From positions 2,615,266 to 2,679,265 of the forward strand of contig NW_003314261.1 of assembly GCF_000143415.4 (NCBI RefSeq): a stretch of 64,000 bases of DNA. Reading direction: 5' to 3'. This document shows positions 1 through 19,233 of the stretch, one piece after another (the stretch's first letter is position 1; the number at the start of each line of letters is the position of its first letter). The notes below the pieces were generated by a model. It did no database searches. It saw only the letters and a program-made list of their open reading frames with translations, and was not told the DNA's origin. A program made the translations under genes and the position numbers. The DNA comes from Selaginella moellendorffii. Lineage: Eukaryota; Plantae; Lycopodiophyta.

Positions 1-140
1 GGGAGAGTTACCACCATGTAGAAATGATGGCTCATATCCGAGCTAGTGCTTGTTCCGTGCTTCCCAGATCACTTGGACGCCAATGGACCACCAAATCACC
101 CATCGCTCTAACCCAACTCACTATGTTTGCTACTCCTTAA

Positions 141-1064
141 CATGGTTGGTCCCGATCGTTCCGAATGCCAACCGGCCGACTGCCCGACCGTAGTTATCTA
201 TCGACGGGCTGTGAAAATGCCGAACGGCCGAACGGTTCACAAAATTTTTTTGAAAAAAAAAAAAACATTTTTAGTAAAACCACATTAATAAAAGTAGGAA
301 AACCAAAGCATTAAACCAAACCAAACCAAACCAAACCAAAGCATTAGACTAAACTAAACCAACTACTACTCATTTTCTTCAACATCTTCGGCAAGTCCCT
401 CGACATCTCTAGCATCTTCCTCAACAATCACATCTTCATTTGGAAGATCTTCTTTGGCTAAATCTTCTATACTAAGAGATTCAAGCCTAGATTACATCTC
501 TACATTTGAAAGGGCATTTGCTATTTGCTCCACAAACATTCGGTGAGCTTGGTTCTGAACATGAAGAGGAACATTTGAAGCACTACATGCTTAAATATCA
601 TGCCCAAAAACTTTAGCAAGATGCGCCTTGATGCATTTCGGCAGACCGCCATACATTTTACCACAATAATTACATTTCCAATGCTCAGCTCCTTTGCCGG
701 AAGCATAAGGAGTGAGCTTGGTAACATGGGACCATGCCCAATCGGGTGCCATCGCTCAATTGTGCCAGAATCGCTATGAATCTCTACAATCAAATCTCTG
801 GAATCACTGAATTTCCATTTTAGGGCAAAAACTTCAAGTGTTGCGGACTGGGCGATTTGATTTGCGAGGCCTCAGTGCTGCTCCACGCTCAATCGAAAAC
901 AGAGGCAGGTATGCACGCAGCTCCTATGCCCTCCTCGCCGCAGCAGCATCAGAAATCTAGCGCGATCACCATTTTTTTTGCCGAACGGAATCATCGAACG
1001 GACCTGTCCGACCGCGTTCGGCGGCGGTCGGGGTTTCGGCCGAACGCGGTCGGGACCAACCATG
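141..1064. mobile_element. Non-autonomous hAT-family DNA transposon (~924 bp)
   Basis: Perfect 15-bp TIRs CATGGTTGGTCCCGA (141-155) / TCGGGACCAACCATG (1050-1064). 8-bp target-site duplication with one mismatch: CTCCTTAA (133-140) vs CTCCCTAA (1065-1072). Repeated subterminal GCCGAACGG/CCGAC motifs at both ends. An interrupted minus-strand reading (~370-600, ACSAS followed by an acidic tail) may be a transposase C-terminal remnant. Confidence 0.85.
301..362 (+). repeat. (AAACC)n-type short tandem repeat inside the hAT element
   Basis: aaaccaaaccaaaccaaaccaaacc with degenerate flanking units. Confidence 0.8.
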
Positions 1065-1600
1065 CTCCCTAACCCGAGTACCCCAGCCATGCCCTCCCCA
1101 GCACGCGATCCTTTGCCATGCAGCTCCAGTACTCGGGCCTCACACATTCAAACTACTGTAGAGCTCTTGCTTCGAAGTCTTGAGTGACCCCTAGCTCTCT
1201 TGTCGCTCCCAAAATCTGTTTCCATGTTTCTTTGGCCACTTTGCAATCCCACAGGACATGAGTCATGCCGCATTCCTTCCATTTATGGGCATCCTGATTG
1301 TAAAGTGTTGCTTGTAAATCCACGTCCACTTGGATCCCATATCGTTCTCCTGGTTCCAGCCACCAAAATCCAATCGCTTGAGCTGGAGATGGAGTGGGAG
1401 ATTCGCCCAGATGGATGCATTGGAGAGCTGCAATGGAAAGAACATCCCGGAAGAATCTAGGATCGAAATCGACGAATTACCTTTCAGCATTGTCAATGCC
1501 GTCTGCCGCTCGTGCGCTTCATTTCCCGCCACAGCAAACTCTTTATTGAGCCCTAAAGAGAGTTTGAATTTTAGGGTTCTATGCAAGTTTCCCTTGGAGA

Positions 1601-3502
1601 ATGCAGGCTGCCGTGAAGCTCGAGCCATGGGAGAGAGTGCCGTGGTCGACCGTCAAATCCGTGGTGCTGCGCCTCCAATCCATGATCTACCGCGCCGCCG
1701 TGGCCAACGACACCGCCAAGGTACACGCATTCCAGTCGCGGCTGCTGGAAAACGCTCACGCGCGCCTCCTGGCCGTGCGGCGGGTCACCGAGTCGAATCA
1801 GGGCGAGGCGTCGCTGGGCGTGAACGCGCTCATCACCAGCGAGGCCCGAATCGCGCTCGCCAGGACGCTGCGCATCACTGACAAGGGCCTGCCCTTTTGC
1901 GTCACGCGGCGCCGCCGGCTGGGGCGATGCTTGCAGGACGTTGTCCGCGATCGCGCCAAGCAGATGCTCGTCAAGCTCGCGCTGGAGCCGGAGTGGGAGG
2001 CTCGGTTCGAGGATGGATCCTTCGGGTATAGGCCTCACAGGAGCTACAGAGACGCCATGGACGCCATCACTCTCTCGCTCAAAGGCAAGGAGAAGTACGT
2101 TCTCGTCGCTCACTCGTGCTACATTTTTCAGGAGTTTGAGCACCGCGCGGTGATGAGCAAGCTGAGGAACTCGCTGCCGATCATCGCGTCACAGGTGGAG
2201 GCGTGGCTGAATGGAGGGATCATGGCACTCCGGTGGCTGAATCCGGGGTATCCAAGAGCTGGGGACTTTGGAGTGATCACTCCGCTGCTGGCTAACATCG
2301 CCATGCATGGATTGGAGACCGCCTTCTACGAATGGTTCGCGAAGTTCTATCCCGGCCATCCAGCTCCGCTCTTCGTCCGCTACTGCGAGCAGTTCGTCGT
2401 GGTCAATCGCTCTCATGCCTTCATCCTCGATGCTACTGTGTTTGTCCGGGATTGGTTGCGTGGAGTTGGCATCAAGCTCGATACGGATAGATACACGATC
2501 ACGGACTCGAGGTCGGGCTTCGAGTTCCTGGGATTTAAGTTCCAGCACGCCATGAAAAACGAGGAGATGAGGCTCAAGGTGAGGCCTTCCAGGAACTCTT
2601 ACAGGTTGTTTTTGTCCGAGCTCAAGACGGTCATCTCCCAGTCACGGGGAGGGTCGTGCTACAATCTTATAAGTCGGATGGCTCCGAAAGTTGTGAGGTG
2701 GGGGCACTACTTCAAGTACTGCCATGCTCGAGGGGTGTTTCGGAAGCTCGACAGTATGATCTATCAGAAGCTGAGGCCGTGGGTGTTTCGGAGGCGGAGG
2801 AACATGGGACGGGCCAAGGCCAAGCTCAAGTTTTTTCCAGAGAATCAGGTTTATCTCTTTGAAGGGACTGAGCGGCGGAGCTCATGGGTGCTCACGGATG
2901 GAGGGACGGAGAGGAGAAGGCCGGTCTTTTTGCCTCTGCTTCGCTGGTTCTCGGGTCAAGGGAAACTCGCCAAAAGCCGTGATGAAATAATGATCAACCT
3001 CAATCAAGTTGCTCTTCCGGATCCGAGGAGGTACGAACTTGGTTTGTCTTTCCTTGAGTTTCAAATTGGTTTTTCTACGTAGGCGACGTCGGATTGTTCA
3101 GCTGGATACTCTGATAGATCTCTGGTCCACTGAGAATCTTCTTAAGCTGGACGACGAAGAGCTCGAGGATTTTGCACAAGTGATGAAACTGGTAAGATCA
3201 GACGTATCCAGTATTTCTGTTACCGAAAAGTGTGTGCTTGCAGGGAAACAGGGTACTTTGGAAAGCTGTTACTGATCAAGACGACGGACACTACGTTTAT
3301 CTGTACGACAATCCCGTACGCTGTGCTGCTTTTCCATATTGTTTCTTTCACTCATTTGCTAAACTTTCAGGTGTTCGTGAGAATCAAGGAGGACATTTCC
3401 AGAAAACTAGACTTTATGTTCTCCGAAGCTGAGAGCGCTAAGCTGCTGACAACAGAATGCGGTGACACTACTTCGCCGCAGCATGGACACTTCAAATTTT
3501 AG
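1601..3502 (+). CDS. Nuclear group II intron RT/maturase-like protein (catalytically inactive) fused to a C-terminal SDHAF2/Sdh5-like domain; exons 1601-3030, 3083-3191, 3244-3315, 3371-3502; the 5' end may extend upstream
   Basis: RVT_N motif PWSTVKSVVLRLQSMIYRA...LLAVRRVTESNQG; RT2/2a DRAKQMLVKLALEPEWEARFEDGSFGYRPHRS; RT4 GVITPLLANIAMHGLE; RT5 VRYCEQFVV (YADD replaced); RT7 GFEFLGF; X/maturase domain LISRMAPKVVRWGHYF; no HNH. Three GT-AG introns (52, 52, 55 bp) keep the frame into RRRRIVQLDTLIDLWSTENLLKLDDEELEDFAQVMKLGNRVLWKAVTDQ...NPVFVRIKEDI. Confidence 0.8.
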
Positions 3503-3559
3503 CTATAGCAAGTCTCAACTAACACTTGTTGAGTACCCCTTATCATGGCTTGCGAAATA

Positions 3560-6500
3560 AGTTTATTATTGTATGAGAAAAAGACTTTAAGGGTATTCAA
3601 AATATATTGATGCTTAATGCTTTTAGCCAAAAGGCTTTTACTTTTAGGATGGTGTTCGTTGGTTACGAGGTGATTTATAATTCTAAGCCTAAAAAATGCA
3701 TGGACATGTAAAACAGTCTATGTACATAAAGACTAATTTGTTTTTGGAGGCTTTCAAGTGTCTTTCTAGTTTGAAATTATTTATAGACATTGTCTACACG
3801 CAAACTAACAGGTGTTGGAATTTGGTAAACAGTATGTTTAGGAACCAAAGACCAACAACCTATATATGGATAAAATTTTGTCATTGTTGACTTTTAATGT
3901 CTTTCTAGTCCAAAATTGTCTATGGATATTGTTGAGGCCAAATTCTGAACCTAAAAATACTAAAAAATAAAAATCACAAAAGTAATTAATGACTTAGAGA
4001 TGAATATCACCAACTCACTATGACAGCTTTGTGCACCATGGTGCATCTTACTCGTTACTACCTTGTAGAAGGCTATTGCAGTTGGCTATCCTAGATTTGT
4101 TACCCTTTGAGATAATGTCTTCAATTATAGTCCTTCATAAATTTCTTGAGTTAGGGAAGTCATCTATTAAAGCATGAGTTATGTGCAAGAATTTTTTTGG
4201 CTTCTTTAGGGGTGATGAAGTAACATTATTTGCCAATTGATGTTTACATATGGCATTTGGTGATTCATCTTCCCGCTTCTTAGCAGTGAAAAACAAACAT
4301 CAAAATGTTCTTGAATTCTAACTTATGGGTCTTTAGATGCACTAACTACTGTCACCATAGATTTTCTAGTCAAGGGTGGCATTATTGGTGCCAAAGCCAT
4401 TGAAGGTGGAAGGGTGGCCTTCATTTGTACAGGTGGGTTGGGGTGGAAGTCTATGTGGCTATATCATAAATATCCCAAAAAACACACTTGCTTCAAATAC
4501 CTTCCCTAATTTCTTAAATGCATCTTTAACCATTTTCAGGTCCACATGGTGTGAGTCCATCTCAAGCCTCATCATTATAATTGAGAAGTATAGTGGAGGT
4601 TTAGTATTGTAAGCATGCACAAACGACATTTTGTCTTTGTGCTTAGATGTAAAAATTTGTTATACAAGCTTGAGTAGATATTTGTATTAACCATTTTTGC
4701 ATGTTGGTGAAGAGGCTAAAGAAAAAATATGCCTTCAACCCAAATGTATTTTATGTAGTCATGGTGCCAAAATGTTACCAAGAACTTAGAGTTGGAGGGT
4801 GTAGCATGGATTTTGAAATCTACTACTTCCAATATATGCTTGCTAAATCAGTTTAGAACATCTTGTCTTTAAAAGCTAGGATCATTAATTTGCAAAATGA
4901 GGATGATATTTTCATTCTCCTAGGGTTAAAAAAAATTCAAATAAAAAAGACATTTAAAAAAAACCAAAAATGAAGATGCAAGAACAAGTCACAAGCTCTT
5001 TGAATTTGATTGAACTACCACAAAATGCTTTATTTCGTTAAAGTGGGACTTTTCATTATCCCACTTATGGTGTGTGGCCACATGCCATTTTTATAACAAC
5101 AATAAAAAATTGAAGTTTTAACTTTATAATTTATAAATTAAAAACTTTTCATATGATTTTGTGTTATAATATTGTGAAATATAAAAAAATAAATTAAAAA
5201 ACTGATAAAAATATTAATAAATATTAATTAAGTACTAGAAAATGGCATGTGGACACATGCTAATTAATGTCCCACTTTACTGAATAAGTCCCACTTTAAC
5301 GAAATAAAGCATCAAACAAATAGCTTCACTGCTATATGTTCAACATAGCAACCCACAACAACCCAAGTAGGATGTAGCAACATTAATTACTTAATAGAGG
5401 GATTCATTTGCAGTCACAATCATCTCCATCTTAAAACTTTCAAGACCATGTAAACAAAATATGAATGAATTTCTTATATTCCATTATAAACTTACAGATT
5501 GCAATTATGATAATACCATGATATGTTTATTAATCTAGCAATTAATTACTAATTCATTACCAAAGTAATATTTGACAAATTCTAATATCTTACCTTATTT
5601 AAAAAGTGTGATTTTTAATTTAAACATATAGCACTTAATCTAGCAAAGTTTAGCATTACTATAAAAAACCATGAATATACCAATACAATCATAGCCATTG
5701 ATTCATTTGAGCCATCCAATAGCTCAAGCCCTAACCTAAGTTTATTTAAATATTGATATAAAGTTTGAGCAAATCACTCCATTGCAGCAAAAGATGATAG
5801 ATATCTTATAAAATCTTCTTGATGAAGAAATTTTTTTTATCTATGGTTGACAACAATTTAGAAATAATACAACAAAAGGTTGCAACCTTTAAAGTTAGGT
5901 TAGATAATTTTATTCTTATGGTACATCTTTGAAATGAGTAAAACTTTTAGTGGAAAGAATTACACTAAAGAGACGATAAATAACCATTTAATGCGAATTC
6001 TAAAAGTTCACATACTTCATGATTATTCTTTTGAAAGTCCAAACGAGCCATTCTACTAAACCATTTGTTTGTGAATGATAAACACTTGTGAAAGTGTGGT
6101 ATATCCCCAGCCAAGATGTTAAAACATGAAATGCCTCAACCATAAATATAAAATTATTATTTGAAAGAATCCATTATAGACATAAATGTTAGAACACTAT
6201 TGTGAATATGATTTTAAAAGTTACTTATCGACTAATTCTTTTGGATATTCTTTCCTTATTATTACAACAGTAGAAAATTGGTATTGCTGGACCCTTTATT
6301 AATCTCTCTTGTGCTAGTGGAGTTAACTAGGCATTTTGAGTGTACTTAAACCAAACGAGCATAAGGATAGAATTTTTATGTACTATTAACTAAGTATACT
6401 TAGTTCGGTAAGGAGTTTAAGCCATATTGTGTTCCAATTTTTTATTACATATATACATTAGAATGTTAACTATATTAAAAAATAGACTATATTCTAGTTC

Positions 6501-9500
6501 TATAATAGTGCTGGAGAGAATCATATGATATCTGCATTAAAAATCATATTGTGTTCTAGAAAATACTTTGATAACAATGCTCAATTGACATTTTTTCAAA
6601 TAATTATCAATGAATAATAAGATCAATGGCCATTGTGAAAGATGTTGGATTTGAGTGAAAAAGTATAAGATTATTAATATTATCATGAAGGCCAAGATGG
6701 AAATGTTTCTTGAGAGATATATTCCATAAAATATTAGTGACAACTATTTGGAACTCAAATGTGTAGACAAATACAAACTTAAAGCTTTCACAGCGTGCTT
6801 GTTAAAATGGTTTTATTTCCATAGCTCTCACAAAAACCATATGGTTTTAACAAAATGAAACTTAAGTACATATTTTTTCAACCATGTATATGGTTTATAT
6901 ATGCATGTTCTTTCTAAAGCAATAGTTATCAATATATATAATATATTGCTCTATGAAACCTATTATGCATCTAGAATTCAACCTAGTTTCTATTATAGGT
7001 AACATATGATTGAGAAAGTATAAATTGATATGGTTTTAATTTAGTTATCTCAAGTATTATTATAATAGCAGAATATACTATAGTTTTCAATATAGATAAA
7101 GTTATGGTGTATTATATGTAAAATAAAACTCCTTATCCAACGGCCCCAATCTTAGAACAATTAACATATGAGAAAAACACAATTCTAATGAAAATTAGTC
7201 AATTCTCAATAGTGTCTTTTCAACGTGAAATGACAATGGATTAAAAACCACCTTTATATGTATTGTGGAGGTGCAAATCAACTTCAGAAATAGTATTCTT
7301 ATTTGTCCTCATACTTGTACAATAGATGTTGCAGATGTACTTCCAATAAATATGAACATCCAGTCCAATTAAGGGTTGTTGGTTCCATTCCTTCTTCTTA
7401 AATTTCTAAACCTTTCTATATCATTATTCATCTTCAGTCTTCTAGTTTAAATGTTTCTTTTTAAATTTTAGACAATAGTGATATCAATGTAAACTTCATC
7501 AATTGGAAATTTGCAATTTCTCATGGCATTTTTTTTTCAACTAGAACAACATCCAAGTTATGCTGAAATGATAGATGGTCGATAAATCTCTTTTAAGCTC
7601 ACCAAATATTAGATTAAGCTAGTAGAAGTGAAAGTATTTAGAATTTGTTATAGTATCACTTTCAATATTGTCTCTATACAAAAATACCTTCATCAATTTT
7701 AATCTTTCCTTGGTTTGAGCTAGTGAATTTGACAATGGATTAGAAATGGTGTGATGTTAATTAAACTATTTTCCTCTCTTCCAAGTCCTTTTCCTCTTCA
7801 ATTTAAATCTATCACAATACTTTGGTTGAGTTTCGGAATGTTGGTTGTTGTGATCATGTGTTATGAGTAATATGAGTAATTTCAATATGTTATAGAAGAG
7901 ATGATATAGGCAAAAACATATAAAAGTAAGATAAATTGTTCATTTAAGTTTTCCTCTTTTCTTTCTCATTTTCTTCTTTCCTTGCATTATATCTTTCTTT
8001 CTCTAAGTAAATTCTACAAGATGATCAAAGTCTTAATAGTGGTATTGAAGTGTTGATCCTTTATATGTAGCTTCATTGGAGGGGTTGGGAGAGATAAAAA
8101 AATGTGTTACAAGTGTTTATGAAGTAGTATATGAAAGATCAAATGTATGGAAATGAATAGTATTTGGCTGCAGGAATTTTTTGCTAACACTTGATTAGTG
8201 TCTCCATGGCAATTGATAACTTCTCAGCAGACTGCACTATAGTTAGATTGCCAAAATCAATTAAAAAGAATTAATTATAAAAATAAAGAACCAAAAGATT
8301 AGACTTTAAGTTTAGAGTAGCAAAATCAACTCCAAAAAGGGAGGATCACAGAGTGGTACTAAAATTTAATAGACCAAATGTTTGGAATTTAATTTGACAA
8401 GCAAGGGAAAGGGAGAACCTAGGAGGGTAACATGACCTAGCCCAAAAGGTGGTTGACTTGATATTATTTGTTTAATTAGTAACAAAGAAGCCTTTTGTTG
8501 ACCATTAGAGTTAACTAAATTGATTAGTGGTTTTGGCAAAAAGGATCTTAATGTTAATGATAGCATCAATGCTGCTAGAAAATCCTTCTTAACATTCTAT
8601 TGCACATCCACTTAGCTTAAAATTTTAACACCATAACTTATTATAGATGCATGTGAGACTTAAAAGCAAAAATCATAAAACTTGTAAATATATGCATCTA
8701 AAGGCAAAGTCCTTTATCTGATCTTTAGGAAATAGTTCATGAGATCAACATTTTAAAACTTCTTGATAAACAGAGCATGGAATCTTTTATCAAATCACTC
8801 TAAGAAGTCAATTTTGGATTAACTTTGAACTATGAAGAAAGATAGCCCATAAGCTTCATCATAAAAAAAATCAATTTTCATCTTGTCATTAGAAGGGTTC
8901 TGAAACTAACAACATTCTCAGAACTATAATTAATAATAAAACTTTTTGTTATTGCAAACATATAGTGATAACTTCCATTCTATAGCATGTTTGATGTACC
9001 TATGGTAATCACAGATAATGGATTGATTCAAACTTTAAACGTCCATTTGAAGTAGAAAATCCTTAATGAAATTAACAGAATCCTTCACATTCTTGATGTC
9101 ACTTTAAACCTCAATAATATAACATCCTTGCCTCAAGATGATATTATCAAAAAGTCTCCTCCTTGTCATGACCATTATCACTGATGCCACACTTTTCATC
9201 AATATTAATATTCTGCTCCTCCACCATTCCCAAAAGAACATTCTTAAAAGAACATGTTGTTCTGATATCAATGGAATGAATAAGGAGTGGATTTTAAGCT
9301 AACTTCCCAACCATAAATCATCTAAGTTATAGAATATTTTAAAAATATTTTTGTGGTTCATGTCATTTTCCCCTCATTCATAAACCAGCCCTAGACAACA
9401 GCCTTGGGAGCTTCACATAAAGGGAGTCCAAGACATATGGTCATGGAGAAAAAATGTGTAAATGATAATATTAATAATATAATAAGTAACCATAAAAGAA

Positions 9501-10060
9501 AGAAAACAATACAACTTTCTCATATGACAATACAGTCATGGAACAACAGAATGTGAATAAAGCAATGGCTCAAATTATATAGTAATACAACTACAATTCT
9601 CCTCTTCCTTGGGATTGTTATCTAAGTTATAATGAACTTTAGAAACACTTTTTTCATGTCATTTTCAATTTTCCACATAGCCTTATCTATAGAATAGCTA
9701 TTCCACTAAATTAACAACTCCTAAGTTGTTTTATAACATGTTTTCACCAACATTTGAGCAAGAATGTTAGCTAAATTAACTTTCTTAACATCAATCTCTA
9801 GGAGCTACTTTGACATCACCAAAGTGTAAACATACTTTACTTCTTCACTTCAAAGGAATAATGTCATGATTTAGTCTAGATTGTTAAGAACTTGCTATAG
9901 CTCCAAAGGGAAGAATGATATGAAGTAACCTAAAGGGCCCTTATTGCCGGTTAACTTAGAATGTGTTTAAAGTATATACTTAACTGATAATATATTTAGA
10001 TTATAAATAATTACTAATTTTCAAAACCTTTATAGCACTAATTACTAAGTAAAAAAAACT
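3560..10060. mobile_element. AT-rich, CpG-depleted, ORF-poor block, probably decayed transposon sequence (family not assignable)
   Basis: Sharp drop in GC, very few CpG, no long ORFs, contains an inserted MITE. Only weak LINE-like peptide fragments can be seen. Confidence 0.4.
5025..5312. mobile_element. MITE / small inverted-repeat element (288 bp)
   Basis: Perfect 27-bp TIR ATGCTTTATTTCGTTAAAGTGGGACTT (5025-5051) / 5286-5312. Inner 18/19 inverted repeat 5073-5091 / 5239-5257. Very AT-rich core. CAAA flanks both ends (5021-5024, 5313-5316). Confidence 0.8.
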
Positions 10061-11708
10061 ATTTCATATTATTGGAAGAATTTGGAGTTGGATGACTTGT
10101 GCTGGCTGGCCAAAAGGCTGCTGCTGAAGACTGGCCACCGATCTTCCAACACATTTTCCCAAAGATCTGGGACATAAGAAAAATACTGATACCCAGTGAT
10201 CTCTTTAGTCTGTGAATCCCACATTCTAAAGTAGGTGTTCTGGACTTCTCTATTCTTTACGTTAACATGCAACTCAAGCGTCTACAAGCTTGGGAGACAA
10301 AATCAAACCTTACGAATTTTTCTTTAAAGCTTAAAGGTCTCCTGCTCGTGGCCATGGACCCCCACGGAAAAGAGAGTGGAGGAAACTGGGTCTGTTCGTA
10401 CAACGCTCTAGGGCCCCACGCCCAATGAGCCAGTCAAGACCCACAGGCCGTGACTGGCTCAAAGCCTGGGCCAATCACAGTGGTCCACCCGTGTGCCACT
10501 TGATGCCGTAGATTCTTCTTTTCTTTTCCCGACGCATGCGACTAGAGGAGAAGTACGGTATGGGCCACGGTACAACCATGAACGTCGTCAGAGCTTTGCA
10601 TGGCCAGCATGTGCAAGAAGAGTATGCTAAAATTTTTTATTATCGGCCTTGATTTTATTGTATGGTTTTCATGACAACCTTCTTCCATCCTGCCGTATCG
10701 AATTTTAGGGATGCCCCACACTGGAGCCTAAATCTTGACCATTGCCCCCATTGACAACGAGACTCCAGCAACCCGATAGCATGCGTATCATCAGTTCAGT
10801 GCAAATGACTACTTAACCCTAAGCAGTTACTCGATGTCAGCGGCATTTTTACGGGTGACATCACCGATTGATTTTCCCGGAGTAGTAGTGGTACGGACAC
10901 TATGGTCCTCACCGCGCATTTAATGGCTTCTGATGCACAGCAGGGCGCCACGTGTGAATACGACGTGTAGACGGGTAAGGGACGGGCGATGTCCGAGTCG
11001 TACGGCTGCGGCTCAAACATCGTGGCCGAAGCGATTGCTAAATCTTCGGCCGGGAGAACATTACAACAGTAAAACTGTAGTCGATCAACTTGCCTGATCG
11101 TGAAATTTTATATGCTTTCGATCCAGAAGAATGGGGTTTGGATGCATGCTAACAAGCATCTTTGGCAATCCTCGTTCGCGGAATCAAGACTATTCACAAG
11201 GCCGCAAAACCAAACAAACGATTTAACGCTAAAATGTCTTGTTAATCTTATTTTTTGGTGGCGGCCATCGCCTTCACGGCCACTGTTGCGGATGCCTATG
11301 CCAGTTGGGCCAAATTTTTTACTGGATGCCCAAACACTCCCCCGTGGAAGGACGTGTTTTACTTTCCATATTTTCTCCATTGCGCGGGTAAAATGCGTGT
11401 CGAAAACACCTAGGTTGAGGGGATGATCCAAGGCGATTGCTTAGCGAGGAGGAGGAGGGCGACGGAGCCACCACGGCACCACCATCTCCACCACCGCTCA
11501 CTCCCACTCTCCCATCCCTTCTTCTCTGTCCTCTCGCTCTCCGCTACCATCGCGCGCCACTCGGTCGTCATCGGCGCAGAGGAGACGAAATCCCTCCGCG
11601 AATTCCAGCACCCAATTGGCCTCTGATCCAGCACCGCGCCTCACACCGCGGGTTTGAATCGACCCAGATAGAGGAAAACTCTCGATCATAGCAGGAGCGA
11701 GCGAGAGA

Positions 11709-13649
11709 ATGGAGGATATGGATATGCTCGAGGCGGTCTACGAAAGGAAGAGCCGGATGATCCCGGTAGGACCGCAGCCCAGCGTCGGTGGCGGCGATTT
11801 CCAGCAGCCGATGATGCAGTGGAAGGAGGAGGAGGAATCGGCGATGGGAATGGACGAGCTGCTCGCGCACGCCGGCTATAATGTGCGGGCCAGCGATCTG
11901 ACCCACGTCGCGCAGCGGATCGAGGAGCTCGACAGCCTGCTAGGGGCGGCGGCGCCCGCGGATATCCTGGCACAAGACACCGTCCACTACAACCCGTCGG
12001 ATCTGGTCAGCTGGATCGAGGGCATGCTGGACGAGCTCGTTCCGCAGCAGCCCACCGCTACCTCGTCCTCCGATATGGAATCGGTGGTCACCACGATCAC
12101 TCATCAGCAACAGCAGCACCTGGATTTCGGCGGTATACCGCCGCCGCCGCCGCACCAGCAGCAAGGCTACGGCGCCGCCTTCAATCCAAACGTGCTCTAC
12201 GCCGACCAGATGGATCTCAGCAAGAACGAGGTAGGAGTAGTAGCATCTCACTCGCAAATTGCTGCTTCCACCACACCGAGGCCGGCATCAGGTTCGTCCT
12301 CGTCGACGTCACCCCACGGCATACCGCCACATGCCGCCGGCGGTATGACGTCAGCCGCCGCCATGCCCACCATCCAGGAGAGCGACGAATTGAGCGGTGT
12401 CCGCCTCGTCCACCTCCTGCTCGCCTGCGCAAACGCCGTCCAGCGCGGGGACCTCGCCGCCGCCGGCGACATGGTGGCGCAGCTCCGGATACTCGTCGCG
12501 CACCCCAGCAGCAGCAGCAGCGCCATGGCTCGCGTCGCCACCCAGTTCGTGGAGGCCCTCTCGAGGAGGATCCAAAACAGCTGCTACAATGGTGGCGGAG
12601 ATCGCCAGTATCATCACCACCAGTCTCAGCAGCAGCAGCAGCGCCAGCAGCAATTCAAAGAAGAGAGCAGCGATCCTGGAAACACCAACAACGGCGCCAT
12701 GGATGAGATCCTACATTTCCACTTCTACGAGACGTGTCCGTACCTCAAGTTCGCGCACTTCACCGCCAACCAGGCCATCCTGGAAGCGCTCGAGGGCCAC
12801 AAGAGCGTCCACGTCGTGGACTTGGACCTCCAGTATGGCCTCCAGTGGCCGGCTCTCATCCAGGCGCTGGCCCTCCGCCCCGGCGGTCCGCCAACGCTCC
12901 GCCTCACCGGCATCGGCCCGCCGCAGCCCCACCGCCACGACCTCCTCCATGAGATCGGTCTCAAGCTCGCGCAGCTCGCCGACTCTGTCAACGTCGACTT
13001 TGCGTTCCACGGCGTGGTTGCCGCGCGGCTCAACGACGTCCAGCCCTGGATGCTTACCGTGCGTCGCGGCGAGGCTGTGGCCGTCAACTCGGTGTTCCAG
13101 ATGCACAAAGCGCTCGTCGAGGAGCCGTCGGATGGGGGGAATCCGGCGGCTGGCGGCAATGGTGGCGGAGGCCGTCGGTCCAGTCCTATCGACGAGGTTC
13201 TCCGGCTGGTACGTAACTTGAAGCCGAAGATCGTGACGCTGGTGGAGCAGGACGCCGATCACAACAGTCCGGTGTTCATGGAGCGCTTCATGGCGGCACT
13301 CCACTACTACTCCACCATGTTCGACTCGCTCGAGGCCTGCAACTTAGCTCCCGGGAGTGTGGAACAGATGGTAGCCGAGACGTACCTGGGACAGGAGATT
13401 GGTAACATCGTTGCCTGCGAGGGTGCCGCGCGGACCGAGCGGCATGAGACGCTGACGCAGTGGCGGATCCGGATGGCGAGGTCGGGCTTCCAGCCGCTGT
13501 ATCTCGGCTCCAACGCGTTCAAGCAGGCCAACATGCTACTCACGCTCTTCTCGGGTGACGGATACCGGGTGGAGGAGAAAGATGGCTGCCTCACGCTTGG
13601 GTGGCACAGTCGGCCCCTGGTCGCTGCGTCGGCCTGGGAGTGCTGCTAA
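11709..13649 (+). CDS. DELLA: DELLA protein (GRAS family gibberellin-signalling repressor), intronless
   Basis: MDELLAHAGYNV (DELLA), RIEELD (LExLE variant), TVHYNPSDL, VHVVD (VHIID), PYLKFAHFTANQAI, ERHETLTQW, terminal SAW. Confidence 0.97.
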   Translation: MEDMDMLEAVYERKSRMIPVGPQPSVGGGDFQQPMMQWKEEEESAMGMDELLAHAGYNVRASDLTHVAQRIEELDSLLGAAAPADILAQDTVHYNPSDLVSWIEGMLDELVPQQPTATSSSDMESVVTTITHQQQQHLDFGGIPPPPPHQQQGYGAAFNPNVLYADQMDLSKNEVGVVASHSQIAASTTPRPASGSSSSTSPHGIPPHAAGGMTSAAAMPTIQESDELSGVRLVHLLLACANAVQRGDLAAAGDMVAQLRILVAHPSSSSSAMARVATQFVEALSRRIQNSCYNGGGDRQYHHHQSQQQQQRQQQFKEESSDPGNTNNGAMDEILHFHFYETCPYLKFAHFTANQAILEALEGHKSVHVVDLDLQYGLQWPALIQALALRPGGPPTLRLTGIGPPQPHRHDLLHEIGLKLAQLADSVNVDFAFHGVVAARLNDVQPWMLTVRRGEAVAVNSVFQMHKALVEEPSDGGNPAAGGNGGGGRRSSPIDEVLRLVRNLKPKIVTLVEQDADHNSPVFMERFMAALHYYSTMFDSLEACNLAPGSVEQMVAETYLGQEIGNIVACEGAARTERHETLTQWRIRMARSGFQPLYLGSNAFKQANMLLTLFSGDGYRVEEKDGCLTLGWHSRPLVAASAWECC

Positions 13650-14373
13650 AGCCGACGCCCGGAATTTCGGGCCACTGTTCTTCTTCGGTGGTGTCGTTGT
13701 CGGACTCTCCAACATCTCGGGCAAGACTTTGTCGGCGCCTTAATAGTATCTCGATATTATCTCTAGCAGAAGTTGCTGCTGCTGCGCACTGGGCTGTGGA
13801 TGCTTTCCCTGTATATCGTGCTGTGCCTGGCTGCTAGCTCTGGGGGAGGCTTGAGTCTGTCCGAAAAAGTAATCCGTCGAAGTTAAATGGCTCGATCCGG
13901 TTTTTTGCTACAGGTTGCTGTGTGACACATGTCGGCAGTCAATGGATCGGACACCTGGTTGAGAGTTGAAACCAGGAAAAGAAAACGAGTCAGTCAGTGA
14001 GCGGCTAAGGAGAAGAGAGAAGAAATATAGTGTACCTGTTGCTGTTGTAAACTCTATATAATTCACTCCCCGCTAAAATAAGATGATCCATCCTGGCTAC
14101 TCTGGCTCCGAGCAGCAACAGCAACGCTGTAGCTGCCGACTTTAACAGCAGTGGCTCGAAGATCCGTTTCATGTTCCCTGACAGCAGCAAGGGCCGGCGA
14201 CGACAGCAACAACGCAAAGCTGTCTTAATTTCCTGCCACGGGCCCTGGAAGAAAGCATTAGACAAATGCAAGCGAAAACAAATGTCAGCGTTTGAATGAG
14301 AGCGTAATAAACGAGGATTGAAGATGCTGTGCTTGGACCTTGACGTTGATGGCGTGTGCCCGCTCGCAAAGCT

Positions 14374-16528
14374 TCACATGGCTCCTTGCTGCTTACAATC
14401 CCTGGTGTTGCTCTCGGGCGACTTGGACTTTTTCAAAAATTCTGCGAACCTCTCCTCGAAAACCAAGTCACTACAGCTATACACGCTACTCAGACCCTGT
14501 TCGTGAAAGTGTTTCCCCAGACGCTCGAACCGGCGTATGAGCCTCTTGTTGAGGCTGTAGCTGAAGAACTGAGGGAAATGAACGAGCTCGCGCTGAGGCC
14601 GATGCATGGCTTTCATGAAAAACTCGTACTTGGGAACCAGAAGCGTCGCGATGCTGAAGCCCAGGAGCGATGGCAATCTTTTCACCATGTCGGCAATTTC
14701 CTTTCTGCATGCAGGACCACACAAATAAAGAACGAAGAGATTTTGTTGTAACACTTGCCTTTGAAATCCAAGTTCGAGGAAGAAGCACACAGTTGGCTGT
14801 AGTTTCTTGTTGATGCTCAAAGTCAGCAAATGAGGACATCGGCTGAGCACCCTTGTCATCACGAGAGGAAAGTTATTCAGAAGTCAAGCAAGGGCCCGGC
14901 AAAGTGCTGCTTACTTGCCGATGCTTTCCGAGTCAATGCCTAGATTTTGTATGAACTTGAGGTTCGGACGGATCTTGGTTTCCACGTTCAAGCCCAGAAC
15001 CATTGGCTTGGACCGCATAACCTTGAGAATGTTGAAAATCCGTTAGGTAGATGGAAACGTGAACGAATGACTGCACAAACCCTGACGACATCAACACCGA
15101 GACTCGCAAGGAAGCGCACGGTCGGTATCATGTTGTCCTTGATGTGAAGAGTCATCAGCTGCGGAGCTTTAAACAAAACCTGCAATACTTTCGACAGCAC
15201 AGATACTTTAAAGAAACTATACTCACTTTGCCAAGGTCCTTGCGCACTAGGCCCAAGCTGAAGAGAAACTCAACTCTCTCCTGCATGTCATGCTTGATCG
15301 TCAGCAGTCGGGGGTGTCTTCTAAGCAGTTTTCCCATCAACAATGGTGGCACGCCCAGATTCTCGAGAGAAGACACTACTCGGCAAAGGGCCTGCGAATC
15401 AAGCTCAGGGTGATTACTAGAGAAAATGGCAGAGCTTCTCACCTCATGACTGTATCCCAGAAGTCCTGGATACAAATAGAGAATCTTATTGATGTCGTCG
15501 GCGGTGGCGTTGGTGCTCTTTAGAAAATCGACCAGGGGAGCCAGACCCTGAGCGTCCGTCTCGAGAAGAGAAAGCTTTCTGGAGATGATCCGTCCGATGC
15601 TGGTTTGCCGAACTCCAATGCTTTCCAGATAAGTTACCAGGCTTTTCAGCTTTTCCCCATCCATGAGAACCGATGGATACCGGTTGACAAGCCTTTCCGT
15701 GTCTCTGCGAGACAAGCCAATGCTTGCCATGTACGTGACACACTGAGTGAGATCATCCGCGCTTCTCGAGAGCAGCTGTGGAGCTCTCGCCACCAAACTC
15801 GAGAGGCTCATGGACGTGAAACCGAGCCGGTTGAGTACCACGACAGCGGGAGCTAGATCGTTGGGGTGATGGTGGAAAATCTTGGGCCACGCCGCGATCA
15901 CTCTAGCCAAGGAGTTGTACTTGACACCAACGCCTTGGAGAAACTCCACCATTGTGTCCACTGGCTCTACGCCCGACTCTAGAACGAACGGCATCACCTT
16001 TGACACGTCCGAGGCTTTGATCCCGAGCTTGTGGAAGTAGGAAACCAGCTTGGAGAAATTCTTCTCTTCGGCACGGGCCAGCACTGTAGAGACGCCGCTC
16101 TCGGCAGCTCTCGGTGCCTGGGAAGAAAGATTGCTGCGCGGATCGTGCGTATCGGACAATGTAGCATCTTCTTGCTCCTCTTGCAAGCCGCTGATAATCT
16201 TGTCGGCGTGCCTGAGAACTTCGAAAGCGTACCGTGAAGGAATCCCATGGCGCTCCAGCAGCGCAAGCAGCGCATTCACGACCTGGCCCCTCTCCAGCCG
16301 CGGCGATTGCGATTCCTCCACCGCCAGCGCCTCGATCTCCAGAAGCGTCGGGACATTGCGCTCCTTCTTGGATTTCGGCGCCGCGGCAGCAGCAGCAGCA
16401 GCTGCCAAGGAATACCTGGATCGAAACGAACAAGCCGCTATCCCTCTCGATCGACGGAAGAACGAGCGCTGGAAGACGCCATTGGCTAGGGCCGCGCAAG
16501 AAGAGTCGAGGAGGCGAGGGACCGCCAT
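14374..16528 (-). CDS. mTERF-family organellar protein, multi-exon
   Basis: Transit-peptide-like N-terminus. mTERF repeats (RAPQLL, RYPSVL, RRHPRLLT, RCPHLLTLSINKKLQPTVCFF, FPQFFSYSLNKRLIRR) spread over ORFs 15155-16528, 14988-15200 and 14374-14862. Confidence 0.9.
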
Positions 16529-16645
16529 GGCACATTGAAAATATGCGAGGATTTAGGGTTTATAACCAGTCGATTGCGATACTCACGCCAAACGAAAAAA
16601 TTAGTAGTAGTATCGATCACCATAGATGATCTTCGCAAAGCATTG

Positions 16646-17917
16646 TCAGTGGCGCCGCCTCTTGCTATACTCGTCGCTATAATCCTCTCCTTTCTCTCTC
16701 GATTTGTAGCTATGGCTGCTGGGCTTGTTAGCGTTGTGATCCCGATCTCTACTGTCCCTGTGTTGCTGCCTCTCTTTCTCGCGATCCAAATCCTTTCCAT
16801 CCTTGTGATCCCGCGAAGCTTTGCCGGTTTCTTTGCCGCTACCTCGGCCATCCTCGTCCTCGAAACCATACCCGCCACCGCCGCCCCGCTCGCTCTCCTC
16901 CCATCCGCCGCTACTCCACCCTCCAGCATTCGCGATCGCGTGCCCGTTTGCTCCGCCCCGTCCGAAGAACGCTGGATTTACGTGAGGCGGCGGCACGCCC
17001 GGGTAGTGCATCGGATACGCAGGACCCCGCGGCATGAATCCCATCCCGAAAATGCCCGGTCTCATCGGAGGAACAAAGCCCGGATCGCCAAACAGCCCCA
17101 TTCCTCCTAGCGGAAGTTGTCCATTGTTACCACCACCACCACGGCCGCGTCCTCGTCCTCTACCACCGCCGCCACCACCCCCGCCACCGCCGCTATTTTT
17201 CTTCCCGGCCTGGCCTTGCTGTGGAGCTTGCGCTGCTTGCGATGGCTGGCTCTGGCTCTGGCTCTTCGCGTTTACTTGCTTGAGGACTTGGGGCGTGGCG
17301 TACTGGACGACGCAAGGGCGCCCATTGAAAATCCTGCCATTGAGCTGCTCCTTGCATTGCTGGGCCGCGAGTGGATCGTAGAACTCAACCTGGCAGTAGC
17401 CCTTGGATTTGCCACTGGCTCTCTCCTCGGAGAATTTCAGCCCCTTGTGCCGCCCGAAATCCGCCAGCGCGGCCTCCAGATCGGCGTCTGTCGTCCACCA
17501 GTGAAGCTCCGAGATGAAAATCCCCGCCTTCGCATTCGCATCCACGAACTGCTGCTGCTGCGGTGGCGGCCGAGCGAGAATCCCTGGCGAAGAATCGATA
17601 GGAGCTGCTGGAGCAGCGCTCTCGCCAGTGGCAATGGGAGGATCTTCATCCTTGCTGAAACTCTCTGGCGCCGCATTAACCCTAGCCGGCGCTGTCGTCC
17701 TGTCCTGCTCGTCCCTGGGGTAGAGCTCACCAGATCCCTTCCCTGGCGCTGCCGCTACTGGCGATGGCGCTGGACGAGCTGGAGGAGCAGCCGCTTCCTG
17801 GGGAAAGAACCCTACATTTACATCGTCGTAGAGATCCTCGTACTCCTCATCGAAATCCTCGTCGCCGCCAATGCCCGCGCTGCCGATCTCCACATCGAAA
17901 TCGAGCTCCTCCACCAT
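16646..17917 (-). CDS. CFIm68/CPSF6-like RRM protein (cleavage factor Im large subunit), intronless copy
   Basis: YEDLYDDVNVG N-terminal motif; RRM IFISELHWWTTDADLE...ERASGKSKGYCQVEF; Pro/Gly-rich PPHVNPAFFGRG; R/D/E-rich tail ending KRRRH. Confidence 0.85.
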   Translation of the reverse strand: MVEELDFDVEIGSAGIGGDEDFDEEYEDLYDDVNVGFFPQEAAAPPARPAPSPVAAAPGKGSGELYPRDEQDRTTAPARVNAAPESFSKDEDPPIATGESAAPAAPIDSSPGILARPPPQQQQFVDANAKAGIFISELHWWTTDADLEAALADFGRHKGLKFSEERASGKSKGYCQVEFYDPLAAQQCKEQLNGRIFNGRPCVVQYATPQVLKQVNAKSQSQSQPSQAAQAPQQGQAGKKNSGGGGGGGGGGRGRGRGRGGGGNNGQLPLGGMGLFGDPGFVPPMRPGIFGMGFMPRGPAYPMHYPGVPPPHVNPAFFGRGGANGHAIANAGGWSSGGWEESERGGGGGYGFEDEDGRGSGKETGKASRDHKDGKDLDREKERQQHRDSRDRDHNANKPSSHSYKSREKGEDYSDEYSKRRRH

Positions 17918-18063
17918 CGATCAAGAGAAGATAAATAACAAGAAACCCTAATGCTATCCATTCCACGTCAGCAGGGTCATCCGCGCTGTCACGCCACGTC
18001 GGACAACAGTTAGGGCTCTTGAGACCTGGAAGTTCTTGATGTTTTCTATTTCTCTTTGTTCTT

Positions 18064-19233
18064 TTAGCTATACTCATTGGTAGCCTCTGGGTGGTAGTAA
18101 CACATCTCGTTCCATACTTTCTCTCTTAGCGCGTCCTCTCGGAGCTCCTCATCCTCGAAATCAAACTCAAACGCCGCGGATGCCGATGGCTCCAGCGCCG
18201 CGTCGTGGAGCATCGAGAGATACGGATGCTCCAGCGCGTCTGTGACCGTGAGCCGCTTCTTCGGATCAAACACGAGCATCTGGTCGATGAGGTTGAGCGC
18301 CAGTGGATTGGCTCTCGGATAGAGGCGCTCCAGCGGGATCTTTGGAGCAAACGGCAGCGAGCGGATGTAGCTCCTGGCCTTGTTGCTCAGGATGAACTGC
18401 AGGTCGTCCTCCTCGGGCGATCCAATTGTGTTGATGATGAGCTTGAGCTGGTGGATGTAGTCCTTGCCCGGGAAGATTGGCTTCCGGCCCAGCAGCTCCG
18501 CAAAGATGCAGCCCACTGACCACATATCGATCGCGCTCGTGTACTCTTCGCACGAGAGCAGGAGCTCCGGAGCTCGGTACCACCGCGTGACAACGTACTC
18601 GGTCATGAACTGGCCCTTGTCACTGCCAGTTCTCGCCAGGCCGAAGTCACAGATCTTGAGATCGCAGCTCGCGTTCAGGAGGAGATTGCTGGGCTTGAGA
18701 TCCCGGTGAAGAACATTAGCCGAGTGGACATACTTCAGTCCTCGTAGCAGCTGCTTGAAACGAGCTCTTAGCACTTTGAAACAAAAGGAGCTTTTTCGCT
18801 CGCTACGTACCTGATAGATGAAGTATTGGCAGTGATCATCCGTCAATGCCTGCGAGGATCTGATGATCTGGTGTAGATCCGTGTCCATGAGCTCGTAGAC
18901 GAGATAGACATCGTTGAATGACGATCTTCCCACCGGCTTCATGATGTCCTTGATCCCAATTATGTTCTCGTGGTAAAGATGGCGGAGAAGCCGGATCTCT
19001 CGCAGAGTCCTCCGCGCGTCCGTGGTGTTCTCGAACGCGTTGGTAATCTTTTTGATCGCCACCTTCTCGCCAGACTCGGAGTTTGTGGCCGAGCACACAA
19101 CGCCGTAAGCTCCCTTGCCAATCGGCTTGATCGGCGCATACCTCTGATCTATCTCGAACAAGCTGCGCCAGAGCATGTAGTAGTGCTTGCCGGGATGAGC
19201 AATGCCACCGGGAGGATCTACCTTTTGAGCCAT
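18064..19233 (-). CDS. Group C MAP kinase (TEY; MPK1/2/7/14-like), one 60-bp intron at 18751-18810
   Basis: [41 protein letters not shown]-terminal [18 protein letters not shown] is typical of group C. Confidence 0.95.

Follow-up and report, generated by a model that had tools for sequence, protein, structure and literature searches.

An open reading frame (ORF) of 493 codons in Selaginella moellendorffii resembles the maturases encoded by group II introns, and it lies in nuclear DNA. This raises the questions of whether it is part of a working gene, from which maturase lineage it descends, and what the residues are that splicing might add to its C-terminus. The ORF is present at 1601-3082 of a 64,000-nt stretch of DNA, hereafter the window, which is positioned on scaffold GL377565.1 of assembly GCA_000143415.2. 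The original prediction took the apparent stop of this ORF to be the TAG acceptor of a 52-nt intron (3031-3082), with two further introns (3192-3243 and 3316-3370) preserving the frame to 3502, and held that the roughly 100 amino acids thereby added align with plant SDHAF2, an assembly factor of succinate dehydrogenase. Our main reading, to which we assign a probability of about 0.6, is that of a real, expressed nuclear gene that combines a domesticated maturase of the chloroplast-like (CL) lineage with an Sdh5-derived exon 2, its product acting as an organellar splicing cofactor.

Gene structure, transcription and selection

Excision of the three introns, all bounded by GT..AG, yields a frame of 1743 nt or 580 codons at 1601-3502, with its stop at 3500-3502. 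RNA contigs from Logan, taken from four runs of four studies, were aligned to 1001-4200. Each run contributed a single contig (1306-1843 nt) that starts at 1595, or at 2031 in run X14, and ends between 3505 and 3593; the longest, of about 1.84 kb, spans 1595-3593. The same three segments are absent from the contigs of all four runs, the sole exception to the pattern being a 47-nt skip in X14. Since each run has one contig that lacks exactly these three segments, splicing is real and the maturase ORF and three small exons form one mRNA. The gene consists of the following elements:

1595-3593, + strand: transcript; contigs of X1, X2 and X7 cover 1595-3028, 3081-3190, 3243-3315 and 3371 to 3592, 3593 and 3505, respectively
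1601-3030, + strand: coding part of exon 1, an RT-dead, endonuclease-less group II intron maturase (residues 1-476 plus 2 nt; Pfam, PDB, AlphaFold/Foldseek)
3031-3082, + strand: spliceosomal intron 1 (52 nt, GT..AG, phase 2), containing the apparent TAG stop of the 493-residue ORF
3083-3191, + strand: exon 2, Sdh5/SDHAF2-like segment (36 residues; RRxxQ at the RGxxE position)
3192-3243, + strand: spliceosomal intron 2 (52 nt, phase 0; RNA contigs)
3244-3315, + strand: exon 3 (24 residues; no detectable family)
3316-3370, + strand: spliceosomal intron 3 (55 nt, phase 0; RNA contigs)
3371-3502, + strand: coding part of exon 4 (43 residues plus stop; no detectable family)

The predicted acceptor and the two further frame-preserving introns are thus borne out by RNA, which joins 3030 to 3083, 3191 to 3244 and 3315 to 3371 in the contigs of four runs; the amino acid strings quoted with the prediction were also correct. 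The skip in X14 (2083-2129) has ends AG..TC, so it is not an intron; it breaks the frame and lies 52 nt from the contig end. Either the assembly introduced this gap or the sample carries a deletion allele. In X1 the 3' UTR at 3530-3592 displays 21 differences and four indels relative to the window, the coding part being 99.7% identical.

The contigs of X1, X2 and X7 all end 6 nt upstream of the ATG, at 1595, that of X7 with five additional unmatched letters. This shared end may be the mRNA start or a mere graph break. An in-frame TGA is found at 1565-1567 just upstream of the ATG, and an out-of-frame ATG at 1581. A search near 1595 identified no canonical telo-box or site II promoter element; a telo-box-like motif resembling AACCCTAA is found on the minus strand at 1571-1578.

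The stretch is expressed, as at least 15 RNA runs contain 40-74% of its sampled words. Downstream of intron 1, the additional 103 codons can be read through in the used frame alone; the other two frames contain six and seven stops. The chance of such an open frame is about P 0.003, and 42 of 20,000 shuffles remained open. Comparison of the RNA contigs with the window identified 13 coding variants at 12 sites, since one site varies in two ways. Of the variants, nine are silent and four replace an amino acid (407 synonymous and 1333 nonsynonymous sites), which gives a pN/pS of 0.14 (binomial P 6e-4). The gene is under purifying selection; no ortholog above 38% identity was found that would attest to long-term conservation. 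GC content amounts to 58.5% in exon 1 and 46-48% in exons 2-4, with a GC3 of 71% over the whole coding sequence. The contrast between exon 1 and the remaining exons fits a composite origin but does not prove it.

The neighbourhood is that of a nuclear gene. Besides a kinase, the window encodes DELLA/GRAS, mTERF, RRM and LRR-repeat (receptor-like) proteins. The DELLA ORF is represented in NCBI, and its 90% cluster mate is XP_024527831.1 of S. moellendorffii. No group II intron RNA was detected in 1-6000 (Rfam, E up to 1); the maturase ORF is not inside domain IV of any group II intron RNA detectable there, and its flanks are plant nuclear DNA. Approximately 850 nt upstream of the gene a short ORF with a BED zinc finger (zf-BED; 594-752, minus strand, Pfam E 5e-5) is found, probably a relic of a hAT-type transposase. 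A suspected LINE zinc-finger relic at 1153-1329 had no Pfam match.

The GenBank gene table has no call within 10 kb upstream of the DELLA gene, that is from window position 1709 onward and covering nearly the whole maturase gene. An exact look-up of the 493-residue ORF in a collection of 15 billion proteins found it absent. With no gene call, no exact copy and nothing closer than 38% identity, the gene is unannotated.

The row of genes at 11709-19233, consisting of DELLA/GRAS (+), mTERF (-), RRM protein (-) and protein kinase (-), has the same order on a related scaffold. The related block on GL377573.1, with a second DELLA gene (651 versus 646 residues), is rearranged with respect to window positions 5856-12500 and shows 91-94% identity in most aligned pieces and 81% in one. 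The comparison used the 10-kb flank of that DELLA gene, which ends before the maturase. Since the divergence exceeds what is expected for a second haplotype, the block may be a segmental duplicate.

A maturase without reverse transcriptase catalysis and its algal plastid kin

Pfam identifies RVT_N (3.8e-18), GIIM (6.4e-13) and, sub-threshold, RVT_1 (1.3e-06) in exon 1. The closest PDB entry is the T.el4h maturase/RT of Thermosynechococcus (6ME0, E 1.8e-35). An AlphaFold model of the maturase part without the spliced tail, based on an alignment of 74 sequences, has a pLDDT of 85.5 and a pTM of 0.83, with residues 458-476 disordered. Foldseek again gives T.el4h, here as resolved within intron RNPs (8FLI and 6ME0, TM 0.63-0.71), as the best structural match of the model. 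Exon 1 is a group II intron-encoded RT/maturase with the RT0-7 plus X layout and fold. The principal features are:

1628-1867, + strand: RVT_N domain (residues 10-89; Pfam)
2111-2113, + strand: His171, replacing the catalytic Asp of RT motif 3, which is conserved in at least 90% of 73 relatives
2381-2392, + strand: YCEQ, replacing the YADD catalytic motif (RT5), by alignment to relatives
2609-2830, + strand: maturase (X/thumb, GIIM) domain (residues 337-410), with 17 of 24 highly conserved columns retained

The catalytic Asp residues are gone: D171H in RT3, D177Q at the Asp of CFD, and YADD changed to YCEQ. Eight residues of RT1 are deleted as compared with the relatives. In run X7, A>T at position 2382 gives Y261F; this is the Tyr of the former YADD, invariant in 73 relatives. 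Homology stops within the DNA-binding (D) region at about residue 470, and the C-terminal DNA-binding plus HNH endonuclease domain that most close relatives have is not retained. A search for an HNH relic downstream, at 2900-4500 in all frames, found none. Elsewhere conservation is substantial, since 85 of the 123 columns conserved at 90% or more among the 73 relatives are retained (69%). Domains, fold and splicing all support the original prediction in so far as it sees here a nuclear gene for a domesticated group II intron maturase, and the lost Asp residues show this maturase to be RT-dead. Of the domains that the prediction expected, RVT_N, RVT_1 and GIIM were recovered, RVT_1 being weak, and Sdh5 stayed below the cut-off.

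A homology search of 5.8 billion proteins identified no relative above 38% identity. The named matches are four chlorophyte plastid proteins, from Gormaniella, Bracteacoccus and Jenufa. The host genes of four further relatives were read from their contigs:

P0001, the best match: petB, algal plastid
P0045: psbB, algal plastid
P0023: atpB, algal plastid
P0061: psaA/B, algal plastid

Hence all eight relatives with a known context are hosted by plastid introns of algae. A mitochondrial maturase ancestry finds no support in this set, the best relatives being plastid intron proteins with RVT_N and GIIM. A quick ML tree placed the Selaginella protein in a set of 32 rows that contains green-algal plastid proteins (SH-aLRT 98). 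Since the Selaginella branch measures 2.8, far above the median of 0.16, that placement is only indicative. Judged by its sequence, the maturase is assigned to the plastid/cyanobacterial CL lineage and not to the nMAT/matR lineage. Either an ancient transfer from plastid to nucleus or horizontal acquisition from an alga could have brought it into the genome.

Intron ORFs crowd the algal plastid contigs on which the nearest relatives lie (L006, 500-2350 and 6001-7809; L008, 1943-3691 and 6001-7752). On such contigs a mitochondrial-type maturase (Intron_maturas2) adjoins CL-type ones, and LAGLIDADG ORFs are found in psaA/B.

Lost catalytic motifs, a long branch, missing annotation, the failure to find orthologs and the transposable element relics upstream (zf-BED) are also what one could cite for a transcribed but decaying and functionless relic of organelle or horizontal DNA transfer. 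A relic of this kind agrees poorly with a 580-codon frame that is intact across three precisely spliced introns and with the retention of 69% of the highly conserved positions at an overall identity of 38%. The confident full fold predicted by AlphaFold, the low pN/pS, the GC3 and the expression in at least 15 RNA runs point the same way. Decay is already disfavoured and we consider it very improbable.

The Sdh5-like tail

The tail exons were searched separately, and the joined C-terminus only by means of a local HMM of bacterial SdhE. The sole Pfam match of exon 2 is Sdh5 (PF03937; E 0.0074, profile positions 10-43 of 76), at 16.6 bits and thus below the Pfam gathering cut-off of 27 bits for this family. 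Its sole PDB match is yeast Sdh5 (2LM4, E 0.085). All 100 matches of an ESM Atlas feature search were Sdh5 clusters, with scores near 0.8, a value reached by a third of shuffled proteins. The local HMM, exclusively bacterial, was made from 127 diverse SdhE representatives using E. coli SdhE as starting query; it gave exon 2 a score of 9.1 bits, which four of 5000 composition-matched shuffles reach. With hhalign a P of 0.00067 and a probability of 27% were obtained. When all six frames of the window were scanned, the exon-2 piece ranked first, at E 0.42.

Exon 2 aligns in one common register across five tests (Pfam, PDB, Atlas, SdhE HMM and hhalign), always to the part comprising RGxxE, helix 2 and helix 3. 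The homology sets in with the opening codon of exon 2, which is what capture of an exon would produce. Measured against the family profile, intron 1 falls directly ahead of the RG position and intron 2 behind profile position 43. Where the family has RGxxE, exon 2 has R-R-x-x-Q in these alignments. In 51 SdhE sequences the Glu is invariant and the Gly near-invariant, and the near-invariant Trp of the family is likewise replaced in exon 2.

Exons 3 and 4 have no match in Pfam, the bacterial SdhE HMM or the ESM Atlas, and joining the tail exons did not raise the score of that HMM. Hence only exon 2, with its 36 residues, answers to the claim that the added amino acids align with SDHAF2, and it does so below the Pfam cut-off; for exons 3 and 4 the claim finds no signal. 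Of the five helices of the Sdh5 domain only the 34 profile positions mentioned are detectable. In contrast to SDHAF2, Sdh5 and SdhE, the Selaginella tail lacks the N-terminal helix, a detectable C-terminal half and a mitochondrial presequence, and it is situated at the C-terminus of an RNA-binding protein. PF03937 is absent from all 120 homologs listed.

These figures leave room for another explanation, in which the maturase gene is as described but its C-terminal exons stem from unrelated or non-coding DNA acquired after loss of the endonuclease, with a chance likeness to Sdh5 between acidic, leucine-rich helices. The sub-threshold Pfam score, the PDB E-value, the hhalign probability and the E-value of the window scan would all be compatible with chance, as would the blank exons 3 and 4, the replacement of Glu, Gly and Trp together, and the Atlas scores of shuffled proteins. 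Chance accounts less well for one family out of some 25,000 being named by five tests in identical register, for the rarity of shuffles that reach the HMM score, and for a homology that starts exactly at an exon boundary. We regard a chance likeness as unlikely, albeit not negligibly so, and consider it fairly probable, from sequence comparison, that exon 2 derives from an exon of an SDHAF2/Sdh5-type gene, its flavinylation motif having since become inactive. The Sdh5-like tail is then most likely a captured helical appendage rather than a working flavinator.

The original prediction had further supposed that insertion into an SDHAF2 duplicate supplied the maturase with expression and targeting. 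This idea is disfavoured because the Sdh5 piece sits at the far end of the protein, whose N-terminus lines up with that of intron-encoded relatives, and no SDHAF2 relic is found upstream. Upstream of the ATG there is no Sdh5 relic and, besides the zf-BED transposase fragment, no coding relic.

Function and position among plant nuclear maturases

The proposed product is a free-standing protein of 580 residues that retains the RT0-7 fold and the X/thumb domain but neither the Asp triad of the polymerase nor the DNA endonuclease. Some 103 residues, joined on by way of three short spliceosomal introns, would have taken the place of its lost C-terminus. Such a protein would neither copy RNA nor cut DNA, and with both activities lost RNA binding would be what selection maintains. 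By analogy with nMAT1-4 and MatK, its function is best read as that of a trans-acting splicing cofactor for one or more organellar group II introns that lack an ORF. Plastid IIB-type introns would be the first candidates because of the ancestry of the maturase. Both the organellar location of the protein and its target introns are what we infer.

There is a conceivable demand for such factors in this genus. The mitochondrial DNA of S. moellendorffii contains 37 introns and no intron-borne maturase (PMC5654404), and matK is missing from some Selaginella plastomes (PMC6590440); together these point to a need for nuclear factors.

The N-terminus argues less clearly. It shows no added presequence with respect to the intron-encoded relatives, RVT_N beginning at residue 10. 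The first 40 residues are rich in Ala, Leu, Val, Arg and Ser and have a net charge of +3, with acidic residues at positions 8 and 11. Given the acidic residues and the missing extension, organelle import is putative. With no evident presequence, the protein could stay out of organelles, as a cytosolic or nuclear RNA-binding protein co-opted for a role other than organellar splicing. An N-terminus collinear with that of organelle-encoded relatives would suit this, and the very fast sequence evolution could reflect a change of function. To our knowledge there is no nuclear target class for such maturase proteins. The composition and charge of the first 40 residues do not exclude a presequence, and characterised plant nuclear maturases all act in organelles (PMC3927076). 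We consider a life outside organelles distinctly unlikely and prefer the organellar splicing cofactor.

How does the gene compare with known systems? Like nMAT1-4 it is nuclear, derived from a group II intron ORF, no longer mobile and probably active in trans on ORF-less organellar introns; the nMAT-type trait of being nuclear, transcribed and spliced by the spliceosome is shared as well. It differs in descent, since the nMATs are described as going back to mitochondrial maturases whereas the nearest kin of the Selaginella protein are algal plastid intron proteins. Mitochondrial-type relatives, for instance the neighbour ORF in L006, have an X domain of the Intron_maturas2 type, where the Selaginella protein has RVT_N plus GIIM. 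Unlike the nMATs it has no evident N-terminal presequence, and it has a spliced-on Sdh5-like tail.

T.el4h (6ME0, 8FLI), the best match in both sequence and structure, is a member of the CL lineage and shares the RT0-7 plus X layout. It is however intron-borne, catalytically active and bacterial, whereas the Selaginella protein is free-standing and nuclear, without the catalytic Asp residues or surrounding intron RNA.

MatK, the maturase of the plastid trnK intron, serves several plastid introns in trans. It resembles the Selaginella protein in having a degenerate RT and a conserved X domain, but it is of another lineage and encoded in the plastid, whereas the Selaginella gene lies in the nucleus, undergoes splicing and is joined to foreign exons.

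The nuclear maturases known from plants, among them eight Selaginella loci described by Guo and Mower (2013), are reported to derive from mitochondrial maturases (PMC3927076), and the nuclear copies of S. moellendorffii group with nMAT1/2 (PMC10012718). The present locus may be among those eight. Any survey that starts from gene models would have overlooked this gene, which the reference annotation lacks.

A full-text literature search returned no paper that connects a maturase or RT fusion with SDHAF2 or Sdh5, and no description of a plastid-type nuclear maturase in lycophytes. The novelty claimed for the architecture therefore stands as far as this search extends, and the gene represents a new lineage and architecture among plant nuclear maturases. 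The more detailed scenario, which comprises a CL-type origin separate from those of nMAT, matR and matK, exon capture from an SDHAF2 paralogue, and a lineage-specific trans-acting factor for organellar, probably plastid IIB, introns in a genus whose organelles would have lost maturases of their own, is offered tentatively, and taken as a whole we rate it below even odds.

The plastid lineage of the maturase, absent from the original prediction, is the more notable point. With its splicing verified by RNA, the gene is a clean example of a prokaryote-type ORF gaining spliceosomal introns and foreign exons. It is also a candidate factor in the organelle RNA biology of Selaginella, which is unusual. 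If the plastid ancestry is true, a second, plastid/cyanobacterial-type lineage of maturases was independently domesticated in plant nuclei, and this route to new splicing factors would be a recurrent one.
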